Below are positions 13,301-50,613 of a DNA stretch of 64,000 nucleotides, piece after piece; the stretch's first letter is position 1, and every line of letters starts with the position of its first letter. The translations under genes were made by a program, and so were the position numbers. The notes under the pieces are model-generated. The model did no database searches and was not told the DNA's origin. It saw nothing but the letters and a program-made list of their open reading frames with translations. The stretch lies in sequence record PP712906.1. The stretch is one strand, 5' to 3'.

Positions 13301-14182
13301 ATGATTATATTCGAAGACATTAATCCGCTTTGTGAAGCATTTGACCGCCCAGCACCTTATAAATGGGATTCTATGTACAACGAAGCTCGATTTACGGTTG
13401 GGAACGTGCAGTATGTCGCGTTTATCAAAGATAATGACACAGCAAGAGGTTTAAGTCTGTATGTGGCATTTCAGCGTCGTGATAACGCAACTGGTCAATG
13501 GACTCACTCACTTGCTAAAGGCTCGCCGAAAGACGCAATGACGGTATTGAGCACAATACTGGCAGCAACATTTGACAAGGCATCAAAAGTTGAACCGAAT
13601 GAAATTACATTCAGTGCATTTCGTGACGCAGAGGACGAAGACGCAAATAAGCGTTTTAGACTGTACAAGCGTATGGCTGAGCGATACGCAAAGCAAATGA
13701 ATTACACAGTTCATATCACTGGTAATAGCTTCACACTAACAAACAACAATGCACCTAAGGTTAGACGACTTCACAATGACGGCATTCACAAAGATGATGA
13801 ACTTACATACGTAAATTTCCCTGCTTGTAATGCATTCACATGGGCGAAGCTTTTCTGGCTCGACAATGACGGCGATTACATCAAACTTACATTACCTCAC
13901 GGTCGTATTCACATTGTGAAAAAATCAAGTGACGTGATTGAAATCGAAGCAATCACACCGAAAGGTCGTTTTGACAATCTAGATTCAGATGAGATTTGGA
14001 TGTCGATGTTATCTGATATTAAAGTGAAAGCTAGAGGCGGAAGCACATTTACTATATCAGAGAAAGGCGCGATTTTAGATGCGGGTGATATGATTTTGTG
14101 TGAGCAAGGTACGTTTTATTACCTAAGTTCTGAAGATGATTTCAAAGAAATATGGGGATATGAAATCGTCTCGATTGAATAA
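13301..14182 (+). CDS. candidate internal head protein, paralog family member A
   Basis: Late promoter; LCE|AFDRP leader; core SLAKG..KDAMTV..ITFSAF..D..KRFRLYKRMAER shared with the ORF at 49762. Confidence 0.75.
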   Translation: MIIFEDINPLCEAFDRPAPYKWDSMYNEARFTVGNVQYVAFIKDNDTARGLSLYVAFQRRDNATGQWTHSLAKGSPKDAMTVLSTILAATFDKASKVEPNEITFSAFRDAEDEDANKRFRLYKRMAERYAKQMNYTVHITGNSFTLTNNNAPKVRRLHNDGIHKDDELTYVNFPACNAFTWAKLFWLDNDGDYIKLTLPHGRIHIVKKSSDVIEIEAITPKGRFDNLDSDEIWMSMLSDIKVKARGGSTFTISEKGAILDAGDMILCEQGTFYYLSSEDDFKEIWGYEIVSIE

Positions 14183-14212
14183 AAAAAAAGGGAGCAAATT
14201 GCTCCCTTTTTT
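14181..14212. terminator. bidirectional terminator
   Basis: A-tract GGGAGC-AAATT-GCTCCC T-tract between convergent genes. Confidence 0.85.
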
Positions 14213-14214
14213 GA

Positions 14215-15879
14215 TCATGGTGTTAGAGGACTACGCTCTTTAACCTTGCGTTCATCGTCGATGTCAATATCAACAACTCGCATGAAGTTAGCGACTTCGG
14301 TTAGCTCATGTAAACGGTCTTGCTTTTTGTAAGCAGACAGAACACCGATTTTCGCTGAATTGTCTTTGACTTTCAATCGAATCACCGCATCGAACTCAGA
14401 CAATTGAACCACGTCGGCTTCGAACATCGTATTACGGTTGATGATGAAATCACAATCGCCTTTCTTCCCGTATTTGCCTGGTGCTAGAACAGGTAACCCG
14501 TCAGACTCAATAACAAACACAACGTTCAGTTTTCTGTCAGATTCGAGCATATCACGCATAATTGATTTGCTATTCTTGCTCGTCGCGTTGACGATTGTTT
14601 TCGCGCTAGATTCAACAAAGTCACATGCAACAAATGGATCAGTTGATGATGTAATGAACGCAGTTGAAACGAACGCACCAGATTCAAGAATCGAGGCGAC
14701 ACGTTTGCTAGACATTTCACAACCACGATATAACGTAACGCCATTCGACACCTTACCAGCTTCATAGAAAGCTCGGTCTAAGCGAGAAATTGCATCCCTA
14801 ACCTTTTCATCACCAGTGCCGTGAACTAACTCTTCATTGACCTTCCACGAATAACGAGACGCAGAATAGCGAGAAATTGCAGCTTGGGTAAGAGAAGATA
14901 GACCAGCATATGAATCTTCTTGCATCATTTGCAACGATAATTGGTCATATTGCTTCTCAAACGCACGTGAGCGGGCTTTTAACAGTGCGGAGCATACTTC
15001 ACTAATCAAATTAGATTTAACGCCCTCTGAACGTGCTGAAGCGATATATGGGTTCATTCGTTCTGCTACATCAACAAGGTCGATGTTCATATCAACAATT
15101 GCTTGAGCAGCGTTAGCCAATTTCGTTAGACCGTCAGTTGCTGCCGCTTCGGTTAATTGCTGCTTGATAGATGCACTGACACGCGCTTCCATTTGTGGCA
15201 TTTGCAGAATTTGATTCGGGACGCGAACGGCAGGGTTTTCTTCTACCCATTGACCTAGAACATCATCTTCATAATCATCATAGCCAACATCGGCAGTCAC
15301 GATGATTGTTTTCTTGCTTGAAATGTCAGTCTCTTTCGCCATTTTAGCAGCAAGAATATTGATTGTTTCTTCGGTTGCTTCGACGAGTTTATCAGCGTCA
15401 TAGCCAGGTTTCGTGATCACGAAGAAGCTGAAATCTTCAGCCATTTCATTATCACCGACGTTCATGATTTTAGTCGTTTCGCAGCCGTATCGAAGTTTCT
15501 TGAACAGCGTTTTAACACGCATGTCGAACATTTTACCGCTACCGATCTTTTGAATACGCATAGACACAGCGTTGGCACGTGTTTTCAACATGAAACTTTG
15601 GATCAATTTAACCAATGTTTCTTGAAACTTTTCTTGGTCTCCCATGTCACGAATGGTTAATCCGCCTTTTTTGCCTCGCATTGCTGAGACAGTACAGAAC
15701 CACGAACGTTTTCCGCGATTTCCGATGTTTGATTTTGTTTTAGTTGTGAACGAAACTACAACGTCACGAGCTTCGCCTTTCATATCGATCACAAAGAATT
15801 TGTTTTCTTTGGTCGAGCGAGCCGGATAGTAGTCGTACGTTGCGCTCATGTTTTCAGTTAATTGTTGAAATCCAATCAT
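14215..15879 (-). CDS. alt: Alt-like ADP-ribosyltransferase
   Basis: C-terminal ART fold: TLYRG, TSST and a catalytic loop reading GDCDFII; MIGFQQLTE leader; late motif CATAAATA at 15912-15919 on the minus strand. Confidence 0.78.
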   Translation of the reverse strand: MIGFQQLTENMSATYDYYPARSTKENKFFVIDMKGEARDVVVSFTTKTKSNIGNRGKRSWFCTVSAMRGKKGGLTIRDMGDQEKFQETLVKLIQSFMLKTRANAVSMRIQKIGSGKMFDMRVKTLFKKLRYGCETTKIMNVGDNEMAEDFSFFVITKPGYDADKLVEATEETINILAAKMAKETDISSKKTIIVTADVGYDDYEDDVLGQWVEENPAVRVPNQILQMPQMEARVSASIKQQLTEAAATDGLTKLANAAQAIVDMNIDLVDVAERMNPYIASARSEGVKSNLISEVCSALLKARSRAFEKQYDQLSLQMMQEDSYAGLSSLTQAAISRYSASRYSWKVNEELVHGTGDEKVRDAISRLDRAFYEAGKVSNGVTLYRGCEMSSKRVASILESGAFVSTAFITSSTDPFVACDFVESSAKTIVNATSKNSKSIMRDMLESDRKLNVVFVIESDGLPVLAPGKYGKKGDCDFIINRNTMFEADVVQLSEFDAVIRLKVKDNSAKIGVLSAYKKQDRLHELTEVANFMRVVDIDIDDERKVKERSPLTP

Positions 15880-15960
15880 TTTATAGACTCACCCTTTAGA
15901 AAATATATGAGTATTTATGATGCACATAACACCCGTTGAAAATATTTTAAACTTTTTCGC

Positions 15961-16040
15961 AAAAAAGGTTGCACAACGATAATGTTATCTCCTATGATTA
16001 CTTCATCAAAACGAATTAACAAAAAGAGAGAACAATTATG
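15961..16040 (+). promoter_or_regulatory. early promoter cassette
   Basis: TTGCAC 15969-15974, TATGAT 15993-15998, CATCAAAACGA box, AAGAGAG SD. Confidence 0.75.
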
Positions 16041-16541
16041 AATGCACAATCAATGACTAACGCTCAAATCGCTGAACTATTCGACATGACAGTTGACGCA
16101 AACGGTTTTCAAGCAGTTGATGCGAAAGGTCGTCGTCATTACCTGACCGACTTACGTCAAAAAGCAATGAAAGCTGCTAAGACGAAGAAAGCACGTAAAG
16201 TACGCGCTGAAGCACAACCTAAAGCAACTGCCGAAGAACTACTTGCAGAACTACAAAGCGAGTCGTCAGATTTCTGGGAAATTCGCGAATCTCAGCCAGG
16301 GATGGACTCTGAAGAACACGGTCTGAACGTGTACGTGACTGCTGGTCTGCCTGATCGTCACCGCGTAATGATTCGCTCAAGTGTTTTGACAAACAAAGAG
16401 CTTGAACGCGAACTCGGCTACTTGAAGCCTACAAATCAGAAAGAAGAACAGCGTCGCAACAAATCGACAATTATCTTCTCTAATCGTTCAGCGAAAGAAA
16501 TCGTTGAAATCATTGAAAAAGTGAAGTCAATTAGTGAATAA
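16038..16541 (+). CDS. hypothetical early protein
   Basis: Behind the promoter cassette; codon usage looks like highly expressed genes. Confidence 0.8.
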   Translation: MNAQSMTNAQIAELFDMTVDANGFQAVDAKGRRHYLTDLRQKAMKAAKTKKARKVRAEAQPKATAEELLAELQSESSDFWEIRESQPGMDSEEHGLNVYVTAGLPDRHRVMIRSSVLTNKELERELGYLKPTNQKEEQRRNKSTIIFSNRSAKEIVEIIEKVKSISE

Positions 16542-16652
16542 TGTGAAATAAATCACGAAAAAGTAGTTTTCGGGTATTGACAATAACACATCAATACCCG
16601 ATAATAAACACATCAAGACGAGATACGAACTACTTAAAGAGAGAACATTATG
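16542..16652 (+). promoter_or_regulatory. early promoter with an upstream CRP-like site
   Basis: TGTGA-N6-TCACG 16542-16557; TTGACA 16577-16582; GATAAT 16600-16605; CATCAAGACGA 16611-16621. Confidence 0.7.
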
Positions 16653-17474
16653 ACAATCACTAAAGCAGAAATGAAAGCAATCGCACTTGATCTAATGAGC
16701 GGTAACAATCTAATGCAACGCGATTTGATTGCTGAAGGTTGGTCTTTCGAATTCTCAACTCGCAAAGCTGCACTTGGTGACTGTAACTACCGTACTAAAG
16801 TACTACGTCTTTCTGAAGTGTACTTGAATGCTCGTACTAAAGAAGAGCAAATCAACACAATCACTCACGAAATGGCTCACGCAATCGCGTACACTGATTT
16901 CAACGAACGTGGTCATGGTGCTATCTGGAAGCGTGTGCATCGTCAACTAGGCGGTACTGCTGAACGTTGTTCAACTGTTTCAAACCCTGAAGCCGTAGAC
17001 AGCAAGTACGTTGTTTTCTTCGAAAACGCTCAGGGTGAACTAGAAGTAGTTCAAAAAATGGATCGCATGACTAAGCGTTTTCAACCAGTACACATCAAGT
17101 CTCTATACTTGAAAGGTCGCAAAGCTGAAACTGAAGGTCAACTTCGTTGTGTTTCTTCAGCGACGTTCAAAGCTATCAAAGCTGATTTAGAAGCTAAAAA
17201 AGCTGATAACGCTGAAGCAGCAAAACCAGTTGAACCAGTTGCACCTAAAGCTAAGAAAACTGAAACACCTAAGCCTGCTAAGAAAGTTTCAGCACGCGGT
17301 CAAGCTGCTCGTGACGCAATCGCAGAAATCGTGATGACTACTACTCACAAAGGTTGCAAGTCAGTGTCTTTCGAACAGCGTGGTAAATACAAAGACTGGT
17401 ACATCATGATTGAACTAGAAGCTCACACAATCGAACAGCGTCTAGATACTTTCAAAAAGAAACACAGTTTGTAA
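16650..17474 (+). CDS. SprT-like zinc metalloprotease
   Basis: LGDCNY..LRLS..TITHEMAHA..GHGAIWK; Pro/Lys-rich linker and a small C-terminal domain. Confidence 0.88.
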   Translation: MTITKAEMKAIALDLMSGNNLMQRDLIAEGWSFEFSTRKAALGDCNYRTKVLRLSEVYLNARTKEEQINTITHEMAHAIAYTDFNERGHGAIWKRVHRQLGGTAERCSTVSNPEAVDSKYVVFFENAQGELEVVQKMDRMTKRFQPVHIKSLYLKGRKAETEGQLRCVSSATFKAIKADLEAKKADNAEAAKPVEPVAPKAKKTETPKPAKKVSARGQAARDAIAEIVMTTTHKGCKSVSFEQRGKYKDWYIMIELEAHTIEQRLDTFKKKHSL

Positions 17475-17484
17475 TCTCTCAATT

Positions 17485-17505
17485 AGCCCCGAAAGGGGCT
17501 TTTTT
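17485..17505 (+). terminator. rho-independent terminator
   Basis: AGCCCC-GAAA-GGGGCT TTTTT. Confidence 0.88.
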
Positions 17506-17510
17506 AGGTT

Positions 17511-17580
17511 TGAGGCGGAAAAATTCCGTCTCATCTTAGTAGAATTAGTGCTTTTAGTGATATTAGAAGTATTAGTAAGA
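17511..17580. repeat. hairpin plus 9-bp-period TTAG array (copy 1)
   Basis: TTAG at 17536, 17545, 17554, 17563, 17572 after TGAGGCGGAAAAATTCCGTCTCA. Confidence 0.85.
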
Positions 17581-17631
17581 TTTGTTTAACAAACACCTTG
17601 ACAGCCGTATAATACACGTCGAGGTGATGAA

Positions 17632-17871
17632 ATGATAACGATATACACAATTCCTAACTGTGACGGTTGTCGTCACGCTATCGCCCTCTGTAAGTTCAAA
17701 CACGTTCCGTATACTGTAATCGAGTTACAGTCGCAGACTGACATCGACCAATTACATCAAAAGCTTGGTGATAATCGCAACATTCGCGTTCCTCTTGCTA
17801 TGCATGGTGACACATACATCGGTCACCTGCCTGAATTGAAGAAATGGGTTGATGAACAGACGTATAAATAA
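17632..17871 (+). CDS. glutaredoxin-like protein
   Basis: ITIYTIPNCDGC CxxC motif, VP motif, YIG. Confidence 0.9.
   Translation: MITIYTIPNCDGCRHAIALCKFKHVPYTVIELQSQTDIDQLHQKLGDNRNIRVPLAMHGDTYIGHLPELKKWVDEQTYK
17863..17870 (+). promoter_or_regulatory. T4-type late promoter
   Basis: Exact TATAAATA upstream of the capsid-like gene. Confidence 0.85.
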
Positions 17872-17929
17872 AAGAAATTACGTACATTCTCTCCGCTGAA
17901 ATGCGGCAATAAATTAAAGGAATCAAACA

Positions 17930-18826
17930 ATGACTGTATCTAATAGTAACGGTTTACCAGACATTGTTACTGTTCAAAAACGACTATATCCGCTGATCTT
18001 CACGGAAATCGTTTCTGAACAGCCAACAAAGCAACCCGTTGCAACTGCTTACGGATTTAAAGCTGTACCTGAAGCTGATGACGGCAGCGGCTGGACACAA
18101 TTTGGGTTTAGACTTGATCGTTGGTATGCTCAAGTTGAATCTTCAAAAATGAAGACTGAAATCTCTCTTGAAACGCTGCAAGATATGCAAGCACTTGGGG
18201 TTAGCAATTCAGTGATCGTAGACTCACTAGCTGACCAAATTGCTGATGAAATCAATACGTCGATTATCGGTGCGTTAAATAGCATTTCAACTGTTGGTAC
18301 TGCACTAACCCTGACGGGTAATAATGATTTTGAAAAAGGTCAAGATCTTTATACGAAAGTACACCTAGCAGCGGCTGAAATTGAAAAAACAACTGGTTGT
18401 AAAGGCACATATGTCGTTGCGGGCGGTAAATGTTTCGGTTATTTGACTGGTTGTGGTGTTGTACAGCGAGTTGGCGAATCGGACGTTTACAAAGCATGGT
18501 CTGGTTTATACATCGTACACGACAAATACGCAACAAGCGATTACGTGACTGTAGGTGTTAAGAAAGACATGGGTGATTATGAAATCTCAAGTCTAGTATT
18601 CAGCCCGTATCAATTCGACCAAGCGAATGACGGTGCGATTGCTTATCAATACAAGGGCACTGACCCGAAATCATTCCACCCTGTGTATGGTGTTATTGCT
18701 CGTTACGCACTAACTGTTCCGCCACTAGAAGACAATCAGACTGGTGCAGTTGAGATTGATTGGTCGAACTTAGGCGCGCTTGCTAATAGCTCAAAGCTTT
18801 CATACACATACGCAGTAACAGTATAA
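17930..18826 (+). CDS. 24: gp23/gp24-family capsid (vertex-like) protein, short form
   Basis: IVSEQPTKQPVATAYG, TEISLETLQDM, LADQIADEINTSII and VIARYAL motifs typical of gp23/24. Confidence 0.75.
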   Translation: MTVSNSNGLPDIVTVQKRLYPLIFTEIVSEQPTKQPVATAYGFKAVPEADDGSGWTQFGFRLDRWYAQVESSKMKTEISLETLQDMQALGVSNSVIVDSLADQIADEINTSIIGALNSISTVGTALTLTGNNDFEKGQDLYTKVHLAAAEIEKTTGCKGTYVVAGGKCFGYLTGCGVVQRVGESDVYKAWSGLYIVHDKYATSDYVTVGVKKDMGDYEISSLVFSPYQFDQANDGAIAYQYKGTDPKSFHPVYGVIARYALTVPPLEDNQTGAVEIDWSNLGALANSSKLSYTYAVTV

Positions 18827-18834
18827 GGTGTGAC

Positions 18835-19347
18835 ATGAAAAATCATTATGTAGATAATAAAGCTCTATACGCATCACTATGCGAATGGAAAGACGAAATG
18901 AATAAGAATCCTGATGCGACAATCCCAGTACCTGATGTGGTCGCGATTAGCATCATGAAGATTAGCGAGAACCTGTCTCGCCGTTACAACTTTAGTGGTT
19001 ACACTGCTACGTGGAAAGAAGAAATGATTGGTGACGCAATCGAACATTGCTTGCGTTACATCAAAAATTTCGATACTGATAAGTACAATAATCCACACGC
19101 TTACATCACTCGTATCTGTTTCAATGCGTTCGTGCAACGCATTAAGAAAGAAAGAAAAGATACAGCGATTAAATATAAAGTATTCTTATGTGATTCGTCT
19201 AACTACACAGTTGAAGGCGAAGAGACTGATTTCGAGTTTCTTCAGCAAATGTTAGAGCGTGTCAATTCTTACGAGTCTGGCAAAACGGCTAAAGCTCAAC
19301 CAGATGAACAGAAAGAACCACTTAACTTACAGAAATTTTACGATTAA
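18835..19347 (+). CDS. 55: late sigma factor
   Basis: NHYVDNK, YNFSGYT..WKEEMIGDAIE, NPHAYITRICFNAFVQRIKKE. Confidence 0.96.
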   Translation: MKNHYVDNKALYASLCEWKDEMNKNPDATIPVPDVVAISIMKISENLSRRYNFSGYTATWKEEMIGDAIEHCLRYIKNFDTDKYNNPHAYITRICFNAFVQRIKKERKDTAIKYKVFLCDSSNYTVEGEETDFEFLQQMLERVNSYESGKTAKAQPDEQKEPLNLQKFYD

Positions 19348-19356
19348 GGAATTAAC

Positions 19357-20802
19357 ATGTTAGGTAACTTTGACTCATTTCTGAGTGAAAATCGCCGTCA
19401 AACTCAGGGTGGAAAAATCTACCCTAAGTTTGGTCAAGTTATTGTTGAGCTAGGCACTGCATCTACTGAGTTCAGCAAAGCCAAAGGCGTTGAAACAACT
19501 ATCGGCATGATGGAGAAGGCAAATGAGCTTAAATCTATCATGAACACTAAACTGGCTGAAGATAAAAACGTCGATGAGAAACATTTCGACATCAATCTGA
19601 GCGAGAACGTAAGCACGGTTAACCTGCTTATGGAAAACGAATTCTTGGCGCTGCCAGCTCATGAGCTACAGCAAGTCAAATCAATGATCATGTGTACTGA
19701 AGCACGTCTTCCTAGCATCGTGATTAAAGGTGGTTCATTGGATCAAGTTGTTGCTGAAGCAACGAAACTAGGCTACAAGAAAAGTGACATTCACGTTGTT
19801 TTCCCGATGCGTGAAATGAAAATCAATCTTGCTGACTCTGACAAGCTTGTTATTGAATCTCTATCAATTGACGACAATTCAGCGTCTGAGATTCTTTCAA
19901 TGGCTGAAAACATCGAGCTTGGTGACGTTTATGTGACTGTAGAATCGGTTGATTCTAAGGCTGAACTGTCTGAAATCACTGAACTGAAGATTAAATCTGG
20001 TAAAAATGCGCTGACACTAGCTGCACTTAACCGCAAGATCATGGATCAGTTTATCGTGAAAGAAGCGAAAGAAGTTTCATATGCACGTGAGCGCAAAGAA
20101 GACACTGGTCTCCCAATGCTTGAAGGGTTCAAGGCATACGATCTGAAACAGAACATCACCATGATTGAACATGCTCAGAACGCATTCACAAAAGAGATTA
20201 CAGTAGCTCCGCTATCTTCGACTGCGTGGCAAAATCTTGTTGATGTTAAAGAAGCTTACTTCGATAACGGTTGGAAACTGAAGCACAACAATACAAGCAT
20301 CGTTCTAACAAACGCTGAACACGCAATGCGTGCTGGTCGTGTTTGTGAAGAATATCGAGTCGAGCTATCTGAAGCAGGTTATCCTCTTCTTGATATGATC
20401 GCAATGATGGAAAGCAAAGGCATGACTCGCTTTGATTGTAAATCATTTGCTGAAGCAATGATGAAATTCGACGGCTGTGTTACGCCAGAGCGCCAGACTG
20501 TGACTGCATTTGTTACTGAATCTGCTAGTAATCGCGTATTTCACCCGAATATTATGTCAAGCCTACGTCCTGTGACCGAAATGGTTGATGATGTTGACAG
20601 TCTAATTCGTGCGCTTGCTAATGATCAGTTCAGCACGTTCAAAATCGGACAATCATTCTCTGAATCAATGCTTGACCAAGAAACGCTATACTCTATGATG
20701 GAAAGCATTGTTTCTGATGGTGTTGATGTATCAGTGGACGGGACTTTGATTGAATTCAAAGTGAATGCAACCAATTACCTAATCAATATCGACATAAAAT
20801 AA
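19357..20802 (+). CDS. hypothetical protein with capsid-targeting-like leader
   Basis: 481-aa ORF; MLGNFDSFLSE leader; AGGA SD. Confidence 0.8.
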   Translation: MLGNFDSFLSENRRQTQGGKIYPKFGQVIVELGTASTEFSKAKGVETTIGMMEKANELKSIMNTKLAEDKNVDEKHFDINLSENVSTVNLLMENEFLALPAHELQQVKSMIMCTEARLPSIVIKGGSLDQVVAEATKLGYKKSDIHVVFPMREMKINLADSDKLVIESLSIDDNSASEILSMAENIELGDVYVTVESVDSKAELSEITELKIKSGKNALTLAALNRKIMDQFIVKEAKEVSYARERKEDTGLPMLEGFKAYDLKQNITMIEHAQNAFTKEITVAPLSSTAWQNLVDVKEAYFDNGWKLKHNNTSIVLTNAEHAMRAGRVCEEYRVELSEAGYPLLDMIAMMESKGMTRFDCKSFAEAMMKFDGCVTPERQTVTAFVTESASNRVFHPNIMSSLRPVTEMVDDVDSLIRALANDQFSTFKIGQSFSESMLDQETLYSMMESIVSDGVDVSVDGTLIEFKVNATNYLINIDIK

Positions 20803-20810
20803 GGTGAAAC

Positions 20811-21458
20811 ATGAAACAATTTTGTAATTTTTTAGCTGAAGTTCAGAAATACAGTTCAGCGGCTACGTCGATTCGCGGTAAAGAAGTTGCTGCATTGGTT
20901 AAATTGTTCAAGTCAGGCATGTTCGTGCCTGGCGGAACAGCACTTGACTACGGCGCGGGCAAATACGGTCGTAATGCTGAATTTCTTCGCAGTGAAGGCA
21001 TTCGCACTTACGCATACGACAAATTCAATGGGACATCGGCTGATGGTTGGAACGCAGTTAGCTTAACTATCCCGAATGGTGAGACATTCGATACTGGCTT
21101 CACGTCATACGTATTGAACGTTGTTCCTGAAGAAGTCGAAGCAGAAATCATACGTGATGTTGAGTCTCGTACACGCGGTAAAGTGTTCCATATTACACGC
21201 GGTACTGACATCACTCAGACTGTATTCAACGTAATCAGCGGTAAGAGCAAGAATGACGTAATGATGCAATTCATTGCTCAAGAATATCCAGAGATTTACG
21301 GTCAGATTGTCGCGAACGGTGGGACTAAAGAATTGGCTAAAGAGATTGCAACTCGTGGAGTTGTAACAGCTAAAGACAGTTTCCAACGTATTCCAGACCT
21401 ATCGAAATACGGTTACAAGAAATCTGGTTCAGGCGCTTCAGTCGTTTGGACAAAATAA
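20811..21458 (+). CDS. class I SAM-dependent methyltransferase with capsid-targeting-like leader
   Basis: LDYGAGK motif I, AYD motif II, YVLNVV motif IV; MKQFCNFLAE leader. Confidence 0.85.
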   Translation: MKQFCNFLAEVQKYSSAATSIRGKEVAALVKLFKSGMFVPGGTALDYGAGKYGRNAEFLRSEGIRTYAYDKFNGTSADGWNAVSLTIPNGETFDTGFTSYVLNVVPEEVEAEIIRDVESRTRGKVFHITRGTDITQTVFNVISGKSKNDVMMQFIAQEYPEIYGQIVANGGTKELAKEIATRGVVTAKDSFQRIPDLSKYGYKKSGSGASVVWTK

Positions 21459-30483: not shown

Positions 30484-31110
30484 TCACTTAGACTTGCAAT
30501 TGTCAAAGTGGTGACGAGTCATTGCACCGCCCTTTTTGCCTTGCTTTCCGCAATGCGGGCACGTGACAACGGGGAGATTCAAAAGAGCCTCGCGTATTTT
30601 CTGCGAGTGTTCTTTTGATTTCGAGACACCTTTTCGTGATTTTGACATTTTTTCTTTTGTTGTATCACTAGTGGGTTCTCTATTCTCCCATGCCTTTTTA
30701 AGGTTTTCACGATGTTCTTCGCTGAATGGGGCACGTTTGATACCTGTCAGTGTTTGAGAAATGGCTTTTGCATGAGCTTCACGTGCATAACGATAGCTGT
30801 GCGAATTGTGTCGATTATCGTTGGCTAGTCGATGCCACGCATGTGCCATTTTGTTATTGTTATAAATTTTAAACAGGAGCCAGTGGACTAAGAAGTGTTC
30901 TCTTGCAGTGAGTACTACAAGATTACTCTTTTCTTCTGAATCCATGTCAAATACGTATTCATCACGTTCTATACTCTTGGTATATCTACACATAGACTTA
31001 GGTAATATGTGATGGAGTTCTACGTAGACTGGTGCAGTTGACTTCGTCCACGCTCTTTCGACTGCTCGATTTATAATTTCGTCGTGTATTCTTTTGTAAT
31101 TCATATGCAT
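30484..31110 (-). mobile_element. free-standing HNH homing endonuclease (Mob-like)
   Basis: ELHHILPKS..NLVVLTAREHFLVH; NUMOD3-like repeats; C-terminal CPHC; TATAAATA on the minus strand at about 31129-31136. Confidence 0.88.
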
Positions 31111-31178
31111 TCCTAAAAGGTTTCTTTGTATTTATAACGGAATAGTCGAAAATTCGGGTTTTATTTGAGGAATACACT

Positions 31179-40451: not shown

Positions 40452-40494
40452 AGTTTTCATCTAAATAGAAGAAACAACACAAAAAGGTATCATA

Positions 40495-41949
40495 ATGAAA
40501 CTGTTTACTGAATTTTATCAAGAAGTTCGACTTGACGAAATCTCAGATCGTGCGAATATCGACATTGATTGGGATTGGGGTCATGAGAACGGTACGGGAG
40601 AAACTTCGGCGAGATTTGACGCAGCCGGTGAGAAATTCCAAGTTAGCGTTGACGAGAGCAACCCGGGTTATTTCACAATCACATTCCAGAACTCTAGTGG
40701 TTATTCTCAGACTGGTAGAGCGGGACACTCTGCGGCTGCTGTATTCTCTGGCGTATTGACGACTTTACGTGAATTCACCGAAACGTACGAAGAAGAAATG
40801 GGCATGAAACCATATGAATATGACTTCAGCGCAGCGTACGAACTACCGAGAAATCACGACTATTACTCGTTGGTTCACAATCGTCGCGAGGCAACTCGTT
40901 TAGATGAAGAAAGCAAGAAAAAGCTATTGAAAGACTTGATTTCTCGCCCTATGCTTTACTACGCACTATCGTTGACGTTTGGTAAAGAATACGGCTATTC
41001 AACTGAAATTAGCGACCGTTGGCTTGCTCGTCTTGCAGGGGGCGCGAATGATTTCCGTTCCGTTCGTAAGAACGTGACTCGAAGCATTCTGTCGATGAAT
41101 GACAACGACGTTAACCAAGCGTTGATGAACATGAGCGGTTCTGTTTCGTTCACTCTTACCAACGAAAACGAACGTCCTAGCAGCTACGACACAGCATTCG
41201 GTGGCGGTCCGTCTCTTGAAGACTACGTTGATGAAGCAGACCAGTACCAAATCGAAGCGTGGATCAATGATGGTCGTGAAGATGAAATCATCGAACATGC
41301 TGATTGGCAAACTCTAGTTCGCATTGCGGAATGGGGTCTGATGCACGATGAACTGATTTTCCATGATGATGAAGACGTTCGAAACGCGGTAATCCGCACA
41401 GACTACGAAATGGGCGAGAAACTAGCCGAATCGCCTGAGTGGGAACATCGTAAACAAGCTGCTGAAAATGGTTTTGGCATTTGGGATCTTGTTCTTGACT
41501 CTGACGAAGACGTGCGCGAAGCTGCATGGGACTGGTCGTTTGAAAATGACGATGCTGATACTCGAATCACATACGCGAAACGCTACGAAGGCAACTTCGG
41601 TCGCGCAATGGCTGAAGACGTGTGGGATCGCATGATCGACGATTCAGATGACTATGAAGAGCGTCAATACGTAGCTGAACAAGGTTATCGTCTTGAAGAA
41701 CTTCTAGCAGACCATGACGAAGACGTGCGTTCTTCTGCAATCAATGCTGTATTCACGGTAATGGGTCTGGATGGTCGAGAAGCGGCTGAGTTCTTGATGG
41801 AAAACTCTGAACCTTACCAAGAAGAAGTGTTTGAATACGCGATTAACGGTAACTTCGGTCCATCTTTCGATGAAGCACTAATCGAAATTGCTGAAGAAAA
41901 CGGCGTTGATGTTTCTGAGTACAAAGAAGACGAAGACGAAGACGAATAA
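40495..41949 (+). CDS. very acidic HEAT/LRV-repeat protein with capsid-targeting-like leader (paralog family member B)
   Basis: MKLFTEFYQEVRLDE leader; CTAAATA at 40461-40467; three units ending DEDVR. Confidence 0.82.
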   Translation: MKLFTEFYQEVRLDEISDRANIDIDWDWGHENGTGETSARFDAAGEKFQVSVDESNPGYFTITFQNSSGYSQTGRAGHSAAAVFSGVLTTLREFTETYEEEMGMKPYEYDFSAAYELPRNHDYYSLVHNRREATRLDEESKKKLLKDLISRPMLYYALSLTFGKEYGYSTEISDRWLARLAGGANDFRSVRKNVTRSILSMNDNDVNQALMNMSGSVSFTLTNENERPSSYDTAFGGGPSLEDYVDEADQYQIEAWINDGREDEIIEHADWQTLVRIAEWGLMHDELIFHDDEDVRNAVIRTDYEMGEKLAESPEWEHRKQAAENGFGIWDLVLDSDEDVREAAWDWSFENDDADTRITYAKRYEGNFGRAMAEDVWDRMIDDSDDYEERQYVAEQGYRLEELLADHDEDVRSSAINAVFTVMGLDGREAAEFLMENSEPYQEEVFEYAINGNFGPSFDEALIEIAEENGVDVSEYKEDEDEDE

Positions 41950-42972: not shown

Positions 42973-43188
42973 ATGGGACATTACGATTGCAAAGAATGCG
43001 GCACTTTTGGTTGTTTCGGTGAGTGTCAAGAGCCAGCAAACGTCGAGCGAGAAAAGCAACGTGTAGAGCGTCAAGCACGTGCTGACAAATACGCTGCGAT
43101 TCTTGAAGCTGAAGAGAGACGAGTACGCGACTTAGAAAAAGCACGCGCATTCTTCTTGGTGCATTATAAGAAAGGGAATCCGATTTAA
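42973..43188 (+). CDS. small Cys-rich protein
   Basis: YDCKECGTFGCFGEC; GAGGTG SD. Confidence 0.7.
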   Translation: MGHYDCKECGTFGCFGECQEPANVEREKQRVERQARADKYAAILEAEERRVRDLEKARAFFLVHYKKGNPI

Positions 43189-43565: not shown

Positions 43566-43567
43566 AT

Positions 43568-43636
43568 AAAAAGGGTTGCACAGTGCAGCCCTTTTCTATA
43601 TCATGAGCACATCAAAACGAAAGAGAGACGAATATG
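43568..43636 (+). promoter_or_regulatory. early promoter cassette within a terminator hairpin
   Basis: TTGCAC 43576-43581, 17 bp spacer, TATCAT 43599-43604, CATCAAAACGA 43610-43620. Confidence 0.8.
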
Positions 43637-44254: not shown

Positions 44255-44278
44255 AAAGAGGGGCATTCGCCCCTTTTT
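44253..44278. terminator. bidirectional terminator
   Basis: AAAAAGAGGGGC-ATTC-GCCCCTTTTT between convergent genes. Confidence 0.8.
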
Positions 44279-45332
44279 ATGGTCTGTAGATCATGTGATT
44301 TGAACCCATTCGTTCCCATGTACCTAGATTCATGCGATTTTTCATTTCAGCGAAGAATGCTGGGTTTGCTCTAATGTCATCAAGTGGCAGTGCAACAACA
44401 CCTTCAGTTTTATGCGCCAATAGCTCTAGTTTATCAAGCAAATCAGACGTTGTACGACCGTCATATTTGAATTGACTGAACCAATAACCAATCTTACTGA
44501 ATTTCGTATCTCTTGTGTATTTCACATCAAAGCCTTTCAGAGCATACGCTAAGTTACTTTCTTTACCGTGAAACGGCTTGCGATATGCGCTATGTTCAGC
44601 ACCAGCACGAGCAAGCAATCTCTTCTTAGCTGCGTCTGGTAGATTGAACCACCCATCAAAGTTTTTCTTGAAGTTCAACATCCATGCTTCTGGCGTAGCC
44701 GGTGAGCCTTTGAAGTATGCTTTCGTATCAGCAATGGCTTGTGCATAGCGTGCGTTAATCTCATGAGAATAGTTCTGATATTCGTCGTGAGACGCTTCGT
44801 GACCGCTTTTAGCGTGACGGATGAACTCTTTATCAATGTATCCGCGTTTACGCCCTGAGTGTTGATACACGCCCTCTGCGTCGCTTGTCTCGAAGTCTTC
44901 AATGTCACCAGAACGATAGTTGTCGTAAGCGTGTTGCAGTTCATGTAATGCCGTGCTATACAACTGTGGCTTCTGCAATCTGAATTTCGCCATGATTTGA
45001 CTAACTGCTGTTACTCCAGTTATATCCACGACAAGCTTGAGATACCCTGCTTCTGTGATCGAGTCGTCATGTAATTTGCCATTCCAAACACCGAGTTCGG
45101 TTGGGTTATTATTGTCTAACTTCAGATATGCTAGAATACCTTCAGCTAGTAATGCATCGAACTCACTCTCACCAGTTCTGATATTCAGAGTTTTTGTGTT
45201 GACGGATAGTTTATTTGGATCCCATGGTGCTTTACTTAGAGCGCCTTCTAACTGGCGTTCCAATGTATCGACGATGGTTTTTGACGCTTGTTCTAATGCG
45301 CGTTGTGATTGTACGTTTTCAAAAATAATCAT
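44277..45332 (-). CDS. HExxH zinc metallopeptidase-like protein with a late promoter
   Basis: TALHELQHAYD; MIIFENVQSQRALE leader; CTAAATA on the minus strand at 45365-45371. Confidence 0.78.
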   Translation of the reverse strand: MIIFENVQSQRALEQASKTIVDTLERQLEGALSKAPWDPNKLSVNTKTLNIRTGESEFDALLAEGILAYLKLDNNNPTELGVWNGKLHDDSITEAGYLKLVVDITGVTAVSQIMAKFRLQKPQLYSTALHELQHAYDNYRSGDIEDFETSDAEGVYQHSGRKRGYIDKEFIRHAKSGHEASHDEYQNYSHEINARYAQAIADTKAYFKGSPATPEAWMLNFKKNFDGWFNLPDAAKKRLLARAGAEHSAYRKPFHGKESNLAYALKGFDVKYTRDTKFSKIGYWFSQFKYDGRTTSDLLDKLELLAHKTEGVVALPLDDIRANPAFFAEMKNRMNLGTWERMGSNHMIYRP

Positions 45333-45350
45333 CTTTTTTCTCGAATTCGG

Positions 45351-45412
45351 TTGACTGTATTACTTATTTAGGTTAATATCTCTCTCATCGAAACGAAAGA
45401 GAGAACATTATG
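45351..45412 (+). promoter_or_regulatory. early promoter cassette with a nested divergent late promoter
   Basis: TTGACT 45351-45356, 17 bp spacer, TAATAT 45374-45379, CATCGAAACGA 45386-45396. Confidence 0.8.
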
Positions 45413-46105
45413 ACTAATGCAGCACGCAAATATGTATACGACATCTTCCATGATGAGCTTCAAAAGCCGGTTGTGAATCTAGACGTATTTAAAATCAAGG
45501 GTTCAGATGGTAAGCCAGTGATTAACTATCTATCGAACCCGCACCTACGCAAACAACGCTTTATTATGTTCGTGAATAAACGACATAACATCAAGTATGG
45601 ACGTTCTTTTTGGTCGCATGATATTCGTGATGATTGTGACAAAATCGAAGGTACTTGGTCGAGCGTGGCTAAGGAAATCATCAAACGCAAAGCCGAATAC
45701 GCAAATTACGTGACTAAGACGTATCTTGATTACGACTATGGTGTTGAAGAGCCGACCCTTGCAATCATCGACAAGATGCTGAATAAGCCGAAGCGTTTTC
45801 ACGTTGCAAAGTACATCAATAATGAACTGTGTGTCACATCGACGAACAATTCAACTGTGCTAATTGATCGTGATACTGGTGTGAAATTCGTTGCGAAGAT
45901 GCAAGATTATCGCCATACTAGTGATATAATGCGACTTGCAACACCTGAAAAAGTGTTTACACCTAACGAAGAAAAAGCACTTTGCAGTGCAATTACACAT
46001 CTTGTAAATTCTCGCATCAACGATATTCGTGCTAAGAAACGTGCGAAAGAAGAGAAACGCCGCCAAGCAAAACGTCAACAACTAATCGAAGCATACGGGG
46101 CATAA
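45410..46105 (+). CDS. hypothetical early protein
   Basis: Behind the promoter cassette. Confidence 0.8.
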   Translation: MTNAARKYVYDIFHDELQKPVVNLDVFKIKGSDGKPVINYLSNPHLRKQRFIMFVNKRHNIKYGRSFWSHDIRDDCDKIEGTWSSVAKEIIKRKAEYANYVTKTYLDYDYGVEEPTLAIIDKMLNKPKRFHVAKYINNELCVTSTNNSTVLIDRDTGVKFVAKMQDYRHTSDIMRLATPEKVFTPNEEKALCSAITHLVNSRINDIRAKKRAKEEKRRQAKRQQLIEAYGA

Positions 46106-46107
46106 TC

Positions 46108-46500
46108 ATGGCATACGAAGTAATCAACGGCAAATTGCGTAAAGTAAAGAAAAACAAGCCACGCGACTATGATAAAGAATGGTCAAAGATGCACGAATCT
46201 GCCAAGAAGCAAGTCGAAATCATGGATCGTATTCATGAACGTGAGCGCATTGACCGTCTAGGTACTCGTGAGCGTCACGAAGCAATGATTGACCTTGCTA
46301 AACGCAATGAGCGTAAAGGTAAGAAAGGCGGTGACTGTAACGTAACTCAGTGTCAAAAGCCAGGCGCAAGCTCTTACAACACTGCAATGAGAGCGTATTA
46401 CTGCGAGTCTTGTGCTCACGATATTTGGCAAGCAGGTCAACGCGACGGTCGTGACTTCATTCGACCAACACCAGATTACACATACAAGTACGAGGGTTAA
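46108..46500 (+). CDS. zinc-finger-like hypothetical protein
   Basis: CNVTQC...YYCESC. Confidence 0.7.
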   Translation: MAYEVINGKLRKVKKNKPRDYDKEWSKMHESAKKQVEIMDRIHERERIDRLGTRERHEAMIDLAKRNERKGKKGGDCNVTQCQKPGASSYNTAMRAYYCESCAHDIWQAGQRDGRDFIRPTPDYTYKYEG

Positions 46501-46504
46501 TCTC

Positions 46505-46744
46505 ATGGGCGATTTTCTATTGGCAATGTTTATCTTCTCGTTCGTAATGGCAAACATCGGTTCGATTTTCATTTGCTTGTATGCGGCATTCAATCGCCAA
46601 TACAACGTACCGATGATCTTAGTTGCACTGTACGGGTTCATGGGTACATTTGTTGTCGGCATCGTGTTCTTTCTGCTGTTCATCTTTGCCAAAATCGAAG
46701 AAACGAAATTCTGGCAAAAACTGTCTAAAATGAGGGAATTCTAA
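46505..46744 (+). CDS. small membrane protein
   Basis: Two TM segments; GAGGG SD. Confidence 0.65.
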   Translation: MGDFLLAMFIFSFVMANIGSIFICLYAAFNRQYNVPMILVALYGFMGTFVVGIVFFLLFIFAKIEETKFWQKLSKMREF

Positions 46745-47076
46745 TGCAACAAACTGTATTATTCATCGACTTCCGCAACCCACACACTGCGATTGTCGCC
46801 AACACGACATTACGAGACAAAAACTTCGATTTGTCGGGTATGGGATTGCGTCGAGCTTGTCAGTCGAACTATATTGCACTTGAGAAGCAAGGCAAATGGC
46901 GTTTAGTGAAATGTCGTTACATGTTTGGGTTCGAATCTATGGAATTCAACACGCTCGATGGTGTTGTTGCATTCATCAACGCGATTAACATCGACAACAA
47001 TCAACCATTGATTCGTGAAGTTGTTGTTGAAGAAGTCGCACCCGTGTACACTAACATTAAAGTACGAGGTTTATAA
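46744..47076 (+). CDS. hypothetical protein
   Basis: TAATG coupling. Confidence 0.65.
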   Translation: MQQTVLFIDFRNPHTAIVANTTLRDKNFDLSGMGLRRACQSNYIALEKQGKWRLVKCRYMFGFESMEFNTLDGVVAFINAINIDNNQPLIREVVVEEVAPVYTNIKVRGL

Positions 47077-47357
47077 TGGGATTTGAAACAAAAATTATCT
47101 GCTATGCAGCGCACGTAACTGAATTTGAGCCAGGATGGGGAACTCGACCAGATGGTTACATCATTGCCAAGACTGAAGCTGATGTTCTGGCAAAAGGCGA
47201 GCACATGCGAGAGATCGCTAAACAATCCAAACACGGCTATGAGTATATCGGTGAAGTCTTTAAGTTCGAACCGACTCAGAAAGCTATTGATGAATTAACC
47301 GACCGTGACTATATCTGGACTGGTCGAAACTTTGATGAATGGGGTACTGTACTATGA
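47076..47357 (+). CDS. hypothetical protein
   Basis: TAATG coupling; EFEPGWGTRPDG motif. Confidence 0.7.
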   Translation: MGFETKIICYAAHVTEFEPGWGTRPDGYIIAKTEADVLAKGEHMREIAKQSKHGYEYIGEVFKFEPTQKAIDELTDRDYIWTGRNFDEWGTVL

Positions 47358-47587
47358 CAATCTTTCTGCTTGTATCATTCTTTCTAGGCGCTTATTTCAT
47401 GAGCGAACTGCCACCAGAATTGCGATACAAAACAACATCGCCTAAGAAACTATGGGCTTCTGCATCACGACTGCAACAAATTGCACTTGTTGTCGGGTTT
47501 GTCGGCGTGCTGTTCTTCTACTTGATTCTAGCTATCCTAATTGGATGGACTAAAGTTAAAGAATCTGACTGGAATCGCAAGGCATGA
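47354..47587 (+). CDS. small membrane protein
   Basis: Hydrophobic segments; ATGA coupling. Confidence 0.6.
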   Translation: MTIFLLVSFFLGAYFMSELPPELRYKTTSPKKLWASASRLQQIALVVGFVGVLFFYLILAILIGWTKVKESDWNRKA

Positions 47588-47750
47588 TAGTTCTTCAGCA
47601 CGAGACTGACGGGTATATCGTCCAAATTGGATGTGACATTTGTTGCACCCCTGACATTGACAAAGCATCCATATTCGAAACTGTTGGTGTCGCACAAGAA
47701 TTCAAAGATCAATGGGACTTATGGGACTGGGAAGTTAGAGAGGTCGGCTT

Positions 47751-47939
47751 ATGATGCGTAGGCATGAAATTCAAGAACTAGTTGAGCGTCGCGGGTTTGA
47801 ATTTCGCGAAGCAATCAATGAATACAGCGAATCACGTTGGCAAGTCATCGACAATGGTACAGTGGTCTACGAATCATACAATGAATACTGCATTGAAGCA
47901 TTCTTGCTTGGCGTAGATTACATCACAGACGCAATTTAA
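47751..47939 (+). CDS. hypothetical protein
   Basis: GAGG SD; followed by a terminator at 47939-47959. Confidence 0.6.
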   Translation: MMRRHEIQELVERRGFEFREAINEYSESRWQVIDNGTVVYESYNEYCIEAFLLGVDYITDAI

Positions 47940-47968
47940 GCCGCATTTCGCGGCTTTTTGAGGTTCAT

Positions 47969-48271
47969 ATGAAGAAACAAATATTAAACATTCAGCGCGA
48001 CGATGCGAAATTCGAGCTATATCGTCAAGGTCAAGCTGCACGTCATGCACGTGCTGAAATCATCCGACACGTTGCGAAGAATCATAACCCATTTCTAGTT
48101 GGTCAATACACGCTTTACAAAGAGCACGACGTGAAAATCGTTCGTCAGTTGCTGCGTTATGCTGAGATAGATGCTGATGTGCGAGTTGTCCCTACGATTG
48201 GTCGTTTGCCAGACTGTTTGAACGAAATTCACGGAATCGGATTCGAGGTAACGCTAAATAATGATAGTTAA
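47969..48271 (+). CDS. hypothetical protein
   Basis: GAGG SD. Confidence 0.65.
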   Translation: MKKQILNIQRDDAKFELYRQGQAARHARAEIIRHVAKNHNPFLVGQYTLYKEHDVKIVRQLLRYAEIDADVRVVPTIGRLPDCLNEIHGIGFEVTLNNDS

Positions 48272-48545
48272 CATTGCTCATCATTCTTTTGATGTGTACA
48301 TTGGTCGCGGCACACCGTTCGGAAATCCATTCAAAGCAGGGATCGACGGCACTCGGAGCGAAGTTATTGAGCTTTATCGAGAGTGGTTGCGCATTCAATT
48401 ACAAGACGACGAATTTAAAAAGCAGTTTATGCAACTAAAAGGAAAGATTCTCGGCTGTCATTGTAAGCCAAAAGCGTGCCATGGCGATGTAATTCTCGAA
48501 GAACTTGATAGATTGAGCAGCCCACTAAACAATTTTATAGGTTAA
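48261..48545 (+). CDS. DUF4326-family protein
   Basis: DVYIGRGTPFGNPF..LKGKILGCHCKPKACHGDVI. Confidence 0.88.
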   Translation: MIVNIAHHSFDVYIGRGTPFGNPFKAGIDGTRSEVIELYREWLRIQLQDDEFKKQFMQLKGKILGCHCKPKACHGDVILEELDRLSSPLNNFIG

Positions 48546-48548
48546 TCT

Positions 48549-48842
48549 ATGAGAGAAGCAATTGCATTATTAAGCAACACGAGAATGGGATATACTGACA
48601 TTAGCGCATTTGGCGATCCAGTATTATATGTTCATGCGGGACATGAGACGGTATTAAAAGTGCAATACACTGAAGATTGCTACTCATTTTACGACTACAG
48701 AAGCAAGTATCTTTATACAGAGCAGTCCATCGACGACTTAGAGATACATTTGAAATCAATAGATGTCGGGCTAGACGATGATCTACCGTTAAATGGTAAC
48801 ATCGACAAAGACACAATACCAGACGGGGAATTTTTAGAATGA
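48549..48842 (+). CDS. hypothetical protein
   Basis: ORF leading into the paralog pair. Confidence 0.6.
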   Translation: MREAIALLSNTRMGYTDISAFGDPVLYVHAGHETVLKVQYTEDCYSFYDYRSKYLYTEQSIDDLEIHLKSIDVGLDDDLPLNGNIDKDTIPDGEFLE

Positions 48843-49759
48843 AGTTTAGTGAATATCAAAGAATAAACGAATCTCTAGATCGCCCTGGCAATTATAAACT
48901 GGTTAGAGAACTCCCGAACTTAAACGTGTATGCGTTTCAAGTTGATGGTGTTTATTATGAAATAGACATTCAGAAATCAAACATACGAGAGCCTAATGGG
49001 ATGCAGTCAATGAAAGCTGAAGTCTCATTCAAAGCACTCGACGGTAGTGGTTATCAACTAACCAAAAAAGACGATAAAACGGCACGAATTGTACTATCAA
49101 CCGTAGTTGATGCTATCTTCAGCTTCGTACGCGAATACAATCCCGCTCAAATATTATATTCCGCATTCAACGATGCTGATCCGTCAGATGCTGCTAAACG
49201 ACTTCGTTTATATCAGATCATGACTAAAGCAAAACTGCGTGAATTCCCCGAATATGATTTCCGAAACGTTGGGCGAGATTTCATCGTCTACGATGTCAAT
49301 TACCAACAACGAGTCGAGGAATTTTCAAGAAGAGCACGTCGACCAGTGGGGTATGAAGAAAGATCAGACCACGTTGAAGTGAATTTATCACACGCCAACG
49401 CTTTTGCGTTTATACGGGCGTTTGGGGTAAATGATGGCGACTCAAAGAGCGGCGTACTAGGTAAAGGTCGAGCTTTCGTAGGCGCAACAAACGAAATTAA
49501 AGCACGTCTAAGAGTAGATCGTGTGGTGTATGAAATGTCTGATAGAGAAGGATGGCTTGCGGCTCTTCAGCACCCTATTTTTGACTATGGCGAGGGTCCT
49601 GAAGTTGATCGAACATATCTAGTCGGGGCATTTAAAAACTTCTATATCGTGTTGACTAGTCAAACAAGTCTAAAAATATACACCGATGATGCTGCGTTTA
49701 CAAAATATGTGAATGCTTTCGACGCGCCATGGTTAAACCCAGAAATAATGGAATCTTAA
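48839..49759 (+). CDS. candidate internal head protein, paralog family member C
   Basis: MKFSEYQRINE|SLDRP leader; ILYSAFNDADPSDAAKRLRLY core. Confidence 0.78.
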   Translation: MKFSEYQRINESLDRPGNYKLVRELPNLNVYAFQVDGVYYEIDIQKSNIREPNGMQSMKAEVSFKALDGSGYQLTKKDDKTARIVLSTVVDAIFSFVREYNPAQILYSAFNDADPSDAAKRLRLYQIMTKAKLREFPEYDFRNVGRDFIVYDVNYQQRVEEFSRRARRPVGYEERSDHVEVNLSHANAFAFIRAFGVNDGDSKSGVLGKGRAFVGATNEIKARLRVDRVVYEMSDREGWLAALQHPIFDYGEGPEVDRTYLVGAFKNFYIVLTSQTSLKIYTDDAAFTKYVNAFDAPWLNPEIMES

Positions 49760-49761
49760 AA

Positions 49762-50613
49762 ATGAAATTTAGCGAATATCAAAACGAGCTAACGGAAGCA
49801 TTTGATCGACCTGCACAGATCACAGCACGTCGTGGCAATCAGAGTTTTTTCATGATTGGTGACACTGAGTACATGGTCGGGTTGTATTACGACGACTCGA
49901 AAAAATCACTCGGAGTTGACTTCATGCATAAACCGGGCGATTCAGCAACGTACTACTACAGCTTAGCCAAAGGCAACTCAAAAGACGCAATGACTGTTTT
50001 TGCCACAGTGATTGCAGAAATCAAGCGGCTTATGAAAGACAACCCGGTAAATAAAATCAGCTTTAGCGCGTTTCAAGACTCTGATAGCTCAGATGCTAAA
50101 AAGCGTTTCCGTTTGTACAAGCGTATGGCAGAACGTTTCAGCAAAGAGCTTGGGTTCAGAATGACCACGTATGGCGATTCTTTCACCATGACACGTATAA
50201 ATCCTGTTGCAGTCAATGTAGAAGAGCCAACTGGTTATGATACAGCGTGGGGTACTGAAATGCTCGATCTGTATGAAGTCAACGACGCTGCAATTGCCAA
50301 AGTCACAGAAGGTGATGGTGAATGGCGTTTGAATAACTGGAACAAGCTGATTGTTCGCAACGGTAAAGTAACACTAACATCGGGTCCAATTCGAATGTCA
50401 GACGCTTGGTACGATGCGTTTTACGACTTAGAATGGTATCACGATGAAGAAGGCGAACAATGGTTCGATGATGAACAGAAGATCGCGATCATCAATGGTA
50501 AAGTTTGGGTCATCCACGACATGGAAATTACTATTTGGCCAAGTATTGAGAAATTAGAATTGCAAAGTGACTCGGAATTATCAAGCGGGACACGTCAATT
50601 GCTCGGATATTAA
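49762..50613 (+). CDS. candidate internal head protein, paralog family member D
   Basis: MKFSEYQNELTE|AFDRP leader; core closely matches the ORF at 13301. Confidence 0.78.
   Translation: MKFSEYQNELTEAFDRPAQITARRGNQSFFMIGDTEYMVGLYYDDSKKSLGVDFMHKPGDSATYYYSLAKGNSKDAMTVFATVIAEIKRLMKDNPVNKISFSAFQDSDSSDAKKRFRLYKRMAERFSKELGFRMTTYGDSFTMTRINPVAVNVEEPTGYDTAWGTEMLDLYEVNDAAIAKVTEGDGEWRLNNWNKLIVRNGKVTLTSGPIRMSDAWYDAFYDLEWYHDEEGEQWFDDEQKIAIINGKVWVIHDMEITIWPSIEKLELQSDSELSSGTRQLLGY

Follow-up and report, generated by a model that had tools for sequence, protein, structure and literature searches.

A DUF6934-like domain in a family of KVP40-type phage proteins and its relation to the N-terminus of T4 Alt

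The gpAlt protein of phage T4 is an RNA-polymerase ADP-ribosyltransferase that is packaged in the head and injected. Here we describe a family of phage proteins whose common domain is homologous to the N-terminal domain of gpAlt. Of the six members that one phage encodes, all but one lie in a stretch of 64,000 nucleotides (hereafter the window), which matches the final 64 kb of Vibrio phage TCU-VP03-AIR1 (PP712906.1) at 100% identity; adding 181,585 to a window position gives the position in that record. Its identity to KVP40, a jumbo myovirus related to T4 (genus Schizotequatrovirus), is 96.6%. An earlier note on this DNA had singled out four open reading frames (ORFs), beginning at 13301, 48839, 49762 and 40495, as a modular family with a common N-terminal domain and unrelated, interchangeable C-terminal halves. 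All four are present, and we refer to their products as P0001, P0002, P0003 and P0004, respectively.

In T4, gpAlt (about 40 copies) is among the proteins of the prohead core, and gp21 trims small N-terminal peptides from it (PMC9958956). The T4 internal proteins are diverse, non-essential and thought to be delivered with the DNA (PMC3012670, PMC9958956); the capsid-targeting sequence (CTS) shows conservation only in IPII and IPIII, and core localisation has been called 'mysterious' (PMC9958956). The internal proteins IPI, IPII and IPIII, with a CTS of about 10 residues, have short N-terminal leaders that are like those found here (MKFSEYQ...LTE) and likewise end in [LI]-x-E. However, the part shared by the present proteins is a folded domain of about 135 residues rather than a 10-residue peptide, and there is no sequence homology between the internal proteins and the domain family. 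Effectors fused to MuF and packaged in heads follow the same logic, in that a head-associated domain is joined to ADP-ribosyltransferases (ARTs) and other effectors (PMC9503650), but the window proteins have no MuF domain. The polyvalent proteins, which phages and conjugative elements encode, combine 2–15 conflict-related domains in one polypeptide (Iyer et al., 2017; PMC5512222), whereas the window proteins are small, with two domains each; resemblance to the polyvalent proteins is seen in metagenomic relatives of the domain, which are giant multidomain proteins (Zeta-toxin, nucleotidyltransferase, HD, GNAT) adjoining portal/terminase or giant-protein genes. A term search of the polyvalent-protein paper (PMC5512222) did not find DUF6934, the Pfam family treated below, and KVP40 is not mentioned there.

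The shared domain and its wider family

Judged by sequence comparison, five genes in the window and one elsewhere in the phage share a domain of about 135 residues. Three of the proteins named in the earlier note are connected directly by BLASTP: P0001 (293 aa; 13301–14182, + strand) and P0003 (283 aa; 49762–50613, +) are 42% identical over 148 aa (E 5e-32), and P0002 (306 aa; 48839–49759, +) matches P0001 at E 4e-16 and P0003 at E 6e-14. The domain occupies residues 1–146 of P0001 (13301–13738), 1–150 of P0002 and 1–143 of P0003, and the near-identical stretches that had been picked out in P0001 and P0003 (SLAKG..KDAMTV, FSAF.D and KRFRLYKRMAER) are indeed there. For P0003 we prefer the ATG at 49762 over the longer frame of the KVP40 annotation, beginning at 49729, because the former gives a start (MKFSEYQ) that fits the family N-terminus; the PP712906 annotation uses the same start.

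P0004 (484 aa, acidic; 40495–41949, +) had been proposed as a more distant member, and it proved to be one. BLASTP against each of the other three gave nothing significant, and a hidden Markov model (HMM) of the three sequences scored it at noise level (E 3.9). It was recovered at E 7e-10 (residues 12–116), among the 299 ORFs of the window, by a profile of 347 domain copies taken from the best matches of the wider-family search described below; the same profile matched P0001 at E 3e-38. In the MAFFT alignment, the domain of P0004 (approximately residues 12–178, 40528–41028) has an insertion of about 30 residues ahead of the last helix, after which its SRPMLY is placed on the KRxRLY of the others, an equivalence that the note had anticipated.

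The family is larger than the four members first named. An Alt-like gene (554 aa; 14215–15879, −) carries a diverged copy of the domain at about residues 5–139 (approximately 15463–15867), which the family profile finds at E 7e-4 among the window ORFs (residues 5–109) or at E 2.5e-6 as a single comparison, and which Pfam PF22028 (DUF6934) matches at E 0.02 (12.2 bits, profile positions 2–119). MAFFT aligns this N-terminus, like P0004, across the whole domain. A search of the whole phage record yielded a sixth copy outside the window (record positions 149,798–150,271, −), which opens with NLTESLDKPA and makes up the C-terminal half of a protein of 320 aa, so that an N-terminal position is not obligatory for the domain. 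In this protein the first ~170 residues match two metagenomic viral contigs of IMG/VR (L017 and L018) at 33–36% identity, over query residues 10–180 and 2–161 only, and two separable modules may thus have been fused in it. The N-domains are basic (pI 8–10) and the attached parts acidic, P0004 excepted. A 351-aa ORF at 44277–45332 (−) begins MIIFEN, its first five residues (MIIFE) being the same as those of P0001; it has no match to the DUF6934 profile or to any Pfam family.

When an alignment of eight domain sequences (A2), taken from the window and from KVP40-type copies, was searched against 1.84 billion representative proteins, 3,635 proteins were found at E ≤ 1e-3 and 792 at E ≤ 1e-10. These relatives are mostly viral, as are the clusters of their ESM-Atlas neighbours; they contain one to six tandem copies and reach 2,215 aa in length. 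Each of the 163 proteins analysed locally has one to five copies above threshold, the first copy starting at the N-terminus in 93 of them. The cut-off of Pfam DUF6934 (PF22028) is passed by 40 of 45 large relatives, with a best E of 7.8e-48. P0001, P0002 and P0003 score 17.2, 21.9 and 20.4 bits against PF22028 (E 2e-4 to 5.5e-3, profile positions ~44–123) and so do not reach its gathering threshold of 27 bits, and P0004 has no match to it; homology to bona fide DUF6934 members was found by transitive profile search. We conclude that the shared domain belongs to Pfam DUF6934 as a divergent member, with an alpha/beta fold that appears to be GNAT-like. The one paper found to name DUF6934 is a genome report on another subject.

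The note had suggested searching phage genomes with an HMM of the domain. The search of representative proteins did bring up further partners: Zeta-toxin, nucleotidyltransferase, HD, GGACT and amidoligase domains occur in metagenomic relatives, the Pfam families beside the domain in the large relatives being GNAT, PolyA_pol, HD, GGACT, Zeta_toxin, Amidoligase_2 and DUF192. The 2,215-aa relative directly follows terminase, portal and two GNAT genes, and other relatives adjoin giant proteins with AAA/SAM-lyase, Zeta, NUDIX and ParB-methylase domains. Pattern scans of IMG/VR returned only KVP40 and VH7D, a word-based protein search gave eight orthologs and nothing more, and the domain profile found nothing among PDB sequences (best E 0.49).

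The AlphaFold2 model of the whole of P0003 (mean pLDDT 86) consists, in order, of four strands, a helix (residues 73–91), a strand, a second helix (109–130) and two strands, with a leader helix (residues 3–13) that is of low confidence and lies outside the fold up to E12. This is the order of strands and helices in the GNAT fold. The top structural matches are GNATs: a VIA-align comparison with 48,161 PDB representatives returned nearly all GNAT acetyltransferases, over residues 15–150, at Z 6.2–7.7, where 8 is the level of a secure match, and Foldseek agreed weakly (E ≥ 6.8e-3). The model differs from GNATs, however, in lacking helices alpha1–alpha2, and the acyl-CoA pyrophosphate-binding loop (Q/R-x-x-G-x-G/A) is not found in the window copies, which read AKGSPKD, TKKDDKT, AKGNSKD and TGRAGHS at this place. 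Across the wider family the conserved residues include Y (98%), R (94%), T (85%) and G (80%), and a T-G-x-G-D loop stands ahead of the long helix.

Homology to T4 Alt and the [LIV]-x-E motif

The shared domain and the N-terminal domain of T4 Alt are homologous. Because sequence profiles find nothing in T4, and a direct HMM comparison with T4 Alt was not significant, this link rests on comparison of profiles with profiles and of structures. An Alt profile, built from the first ~210 residues of 11 N-termini (T4 and ten diverse T4-like phages), matched the 347-instance DUF6934 profile over the core with Prob 87.9% and E 3.2e-6 in hhalign, compared with E 0.076 for the reversed control. When the alignment threshold was made permissive, the match extended over the entire domain, with LnEvFD of the Alt consensus falling on the L-x-E-x-F-D of the family. 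The P0003 model gave 41 matches at E ≤ 1e-3 in a Foldseek search of BFVD, including the Alt of Aeromonas phage phiAS5 and the Alt-type ADP-ribosyltransferases of HY03, Henu6 and Melville (E 1.8e-4 to 7.7e-4); the Alt-type proteins of CF1 (2.0e-3) and SP18 (2.8e-3) lie just beyond the cut-off. Further matches are a Zeta-toxin protein of Atu_ph07, ParB proteins and a 'structural protein' of a Tenacibaculum phage.

The product of the window gene at 14215–15879 (−) resembles T4 Alt in its other half as well, as it has an Alt-type ART domain: residues 280–553 match phrog_802 (Alt/VIP2-type ADP-ribosyltransferase) at E 2.6e-88, and there is a weak direct match to T4 alt (6.5e-5). In T4-type Alt it is the N-terminal ~140 residues that are homologous to the shared domain. 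The two systems differ in that the other five of the six KVP40-type proteins have no ART, that the similarity is detectable only from profile to profile, and that T4 itself shows no second copy of the domain.

In GenBank X15811, T4 alt is annotated as posttranslationally processed with '6 amino acids cleaved off', i.e., after MELITE. As far as the aligned sequences allow the two to be superimposed, this cleavage coincides with the near-invariant Glu of the family. The Glu is found in 294 of 295 aligned instances, and P3 is L, I or V in 268 of 282. All six phage proteins have the [LIV]-x-E motif, and it is retained in 190 internal repeats.

C-terminal regions and paralogy

The earlier note took the C-terminal halves of its four proteins to be unrelated. 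This holds for P0004, in which the domain is followed by HEAT-like repeats (24.9 bits against Pfam HEAT, cut-off 23.5) with repeated DEDVR motifs, and it does not hold for the other three. PHROG 6387 (phrog_6387) spans P0001, P0002 and P0003 end to end. The C-halves of 21 family members were cut out and sorted by BLASTP into three ortholog groups (g1, g2 and g3); in hhalign the g1 and g2 profiles matched with Prob 92.6% (E 4.4e-7) and the g2 and g3 profiles with Prob 68% (E 4.7e-5), and the direct comparison of g1 with g3 was not significant. In the joint alignment of the C-halves an invariant G, N, G and W are colinear. Because the C-halves are homologous by PHROG assignment, by profile comparison and by these colinear residues, the sequences identify 13301, 48839 and 49762 as diverged paralogs over their whole length, with no cassette swaps. 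Different partners of the domain are present only in P0004 (HEAT), the Alt-like protein (ART) and the 320-aa protein. As a control, the C-half profiles were also compared with the N-domain profile; the resulting E of 0.36–0.73 ruled out that the C-halves are a degenerate second copy of DUF6934.

Across KVP40-type phages each paralog has conserved orthologs at the same locus, with no turnover of cassettes. The genes of P0002 and P0003 form a tandem pair, in which the start of the first (48839) overlaps the stop codon of the preceding gene and the second is followed by an intrinsic-terminator-like hairpin (50616–50641, +) that closes the transcription unit. This tandem locus is a single gene in phages nt-1 (L042) and 6E35.1a (L041), and the pair is therefore a lineage-specific duplication.

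The conserved C-domain extends over 13739–14179 in P0001 and over residues 151–283 (50212–50610) in P0003, and it follows the DUF6934-like domain in P0002 too. Modelled alone with AlphaFold, the C-domain of P0003 reaches a pLDDT of 95. No convincing relative was found among solved structures, the best being CorC_HlyC domains at Z 5.0 over 76 residues, and in BFVD only its own ortholog and a 179-aa protein of Vibrio phage phi-pp2 match the model. The latter (I6W6Y6; Foldseek E 1.8e-5, TM 0.62) suggests that KVP40-type phages may also have the C-domain unaccompanied by a DUF6934 domain. No further copy in the window was found with a C-domain HMM, the C-domain matched no toxin or defence family, and PADLOC gave no match for any family member.

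Proposed packaging, rival explanations and neighbouring genes

We propose that the family consists of proteins that are packaged in the head, trimmed by protease and injected, that the domain is or contains the loading and processing signal, and that the attached domains act in the host; we give this reading a probability of roughly 0.55. The domain proteins would be made late in infection, as with Alt, and built into the prohead core, where the gp21-type (S77) prohead protease would cut after the near-invariant Glu of the [LIV]-x-E that opens the domain. The trimmed proteins would then remain in the head filled with DNA and pass into the host along with this DNA. Their working parts would be the regions joined to the domain, namely the ADP-ribosyltransferase, a HEAT-repeat binder, and the conserved alpha/beta domain of about 135 aa in the three paralogs.

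Several observations are consistent with this proposal. Among the phage's genes is one for an S77 prohead protease (E 1.7e-105), with the gene of the sixth paralog about 8 kb away. Ahead of 13301 there is a terminator hairpin and then an exact T4-type late promoter box, TATAAATA (box 13272–13279, whole element 13248–13279, +), 21 nt before the ATG; the window contains only four exact boxes of this kind. The Alt-like gene is preceded by the box CATAAATA (15912–15919) and 40495 by a terminator and the box TCTAAATA (40460–40467). In Pseudomonas phage PA5oct, a homolog that consists of the domain alone (EST35_0349, 141 aa) is annotated as 'structural protein, ESI-MS/MS'; it matches the A2 profile at 2.2e-20, and the figure of 2.1e-38 comes from a profile that already contained this sequence. 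The idea of a packaging or delivery module with different partners, which the note had put forward, is supported at the level of the whole family, with its ART, HEAT and third type of partner and its Alt homology; the module is not always N-terminal. We advance a broader claim only tentatively: the DUF6934/Alt N-terminal domain could be a general module of T4-like and other large myoviruses for placing cargo in the prohead core and presenting it to the protease, which would explain the entry of gpAlt, and the tandem arrays could be polyproteins cut at each [LIV]-x-E into head-borne units of about 140 residues.

A number of results weigh against packaging and processing. The domain match of the Alt-like protein is weak (E 7e-4 and 0.02, see above), its N-terminus does not significantly match the T4-type Alt N-terminal profile (E 0.37), and searches of T4 with PF22028 and with a 17-sequence profile found nothing. 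The late boxes before the Alt-like gene and 40495 carry one mismatch each; no late box precedes the tandem pair 48839/49762, with which a long operon-like series of small genes ends. Conservation of L-x-E-x-F-D-x-P extends to either side of the Glu and to all internal repeats; beyond being a protease site, the motif may therefore have a structural or functional role in the fold. The mass spectrometry of PA5oct lists 87 'structural' proteins and may therefore include contaminants. Neither a virion proteome nor N-terminal sequencing of a KVP40-type phage turned up in our literature search, and packaging and cleavage are for this reason what we infer.

The main rival places the function in the domain itself, which would work inside the host during infection as a GNAT-like enzyme or a ligand or protein binder, for instance transferring acyl groups or inhibiting a host defence. 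An active or binding site would then be made up of the conserved E, T, R and Y together with the T-G-x-G loop, and the leader and L-x-E would be part of the fold rather than targeting and cleavage signals. GNATs, including the anti-CRISPR acetyltransferase AcrVA5, fill the list of structural matches over residues 15–150, the conserved Y, R, T and G and the T-G-x-G-D loop resemble GNAT motifs A and B, the domain is found at any position and in tandem arrays, and conservation of the motif extends to both sides of the Glu, all of which would fit such an effector. However, Z scores under 8 may reflect a common arrangement only, alpha1–alpha2 are absent from the model and the window copies have no G-x-G loop; arrays of three to six tandem copies would be unusual for an enzyme, and the coincidence with the Alt cleavage site would be left unexplained. 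We regard this explanation as rather unlikely, and note that it is compatible with packaging, so that the two readings are not exclusive.

The model of the earlier note, a polymorphic effector system that at three loci recombines a single N-terminal trafficking module with unrelated and interchangeable toxin or anti-defence payloads, has in its favour that differing partners follow the domain both here (ART, HEAT, C-domain) and in the relatives, and that copy number at the tandem locus differs between related phages. Its weakness is that three of the four named proteins have homologous payloads and that each ortholog keeps its locus throughout the KVP40-type phages, which also speaks against interchangeable payloads as such. 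Moreover, no match of the C-domain to toxins, defence families or PADLOC was found, the sixth member carries the domain at its C-terminal end, and the limited sample is consistent with the same C-domains being always tied to the same N-domain lineages; we consider a polymorphic system of this kind quite improbable. We give as little credence to the proposal that the proteins are cytoplasmic and non-packaged, with unrelated roles, having merely inherited a common stable domain whose resemblance to the T4 leader and cleavage site is coincidental. The lack of direct virion evidence in KVP40-type phages would agree with it, as would the position of the tandem pair in a small-gene cluster next to nucleotide-metabolism genes, but it does not accord with the homology of the domain to the N-terminus of Alt, the late promoter ahead of 13301, the giant relative adjoining portal and the virion annotation in PA5oct.

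A folded domain that T4 Alt has in common with six KVP40-type and thousands of viral proteins is a candidate for a second, widespread loading and processing signal. If the packaged reading is true, annotators could flag injected cargo in large phages, the unrecognised internal proteins of KVP40 would be defined, and foreign proteins could be loaded into phage heads by a natural handle. Should the domain be a GNAT-like effector instead, it would represent a very large uncharacterised family of host-acting phage proteins.

Lastly, we note some neighbouring genes with features of head proteins or late promoters. A 298-aa ORF at 17930–18826 (+), preceded by an exact TATAAATA box at 17863–17870, has a match to Gp23 of Pfam (major capsid protein; E 4.5e-47, profile positions 127–366); it gives the impression of a gp23-like gene, either truncated or paralogous, well away from the cluster of head genes. 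The 215-aa ORF at 20811–21458 (+) has no Pfam match at E ≤ 0.01; its first residues, MKQFCNFLAE, closely resemble the T4 capsid-targeting sequence with its [LI]-x-E end. Outside the window, just upstream of the sixth paralog, a 197-aa ORF (L009:2415–3008, −) begins MIEFLTEM, similar to a leader plus LxE. The remaining exact TATAAATA boxes, at 31129–31136 (−) and 54280–54287 (−), are just upstream of the minus-strand ORFs 30484–31110 and 53545–54246, both of which contain HHILPKS and, from this motif, look like homing-endonuclease genes under putative late promoters.

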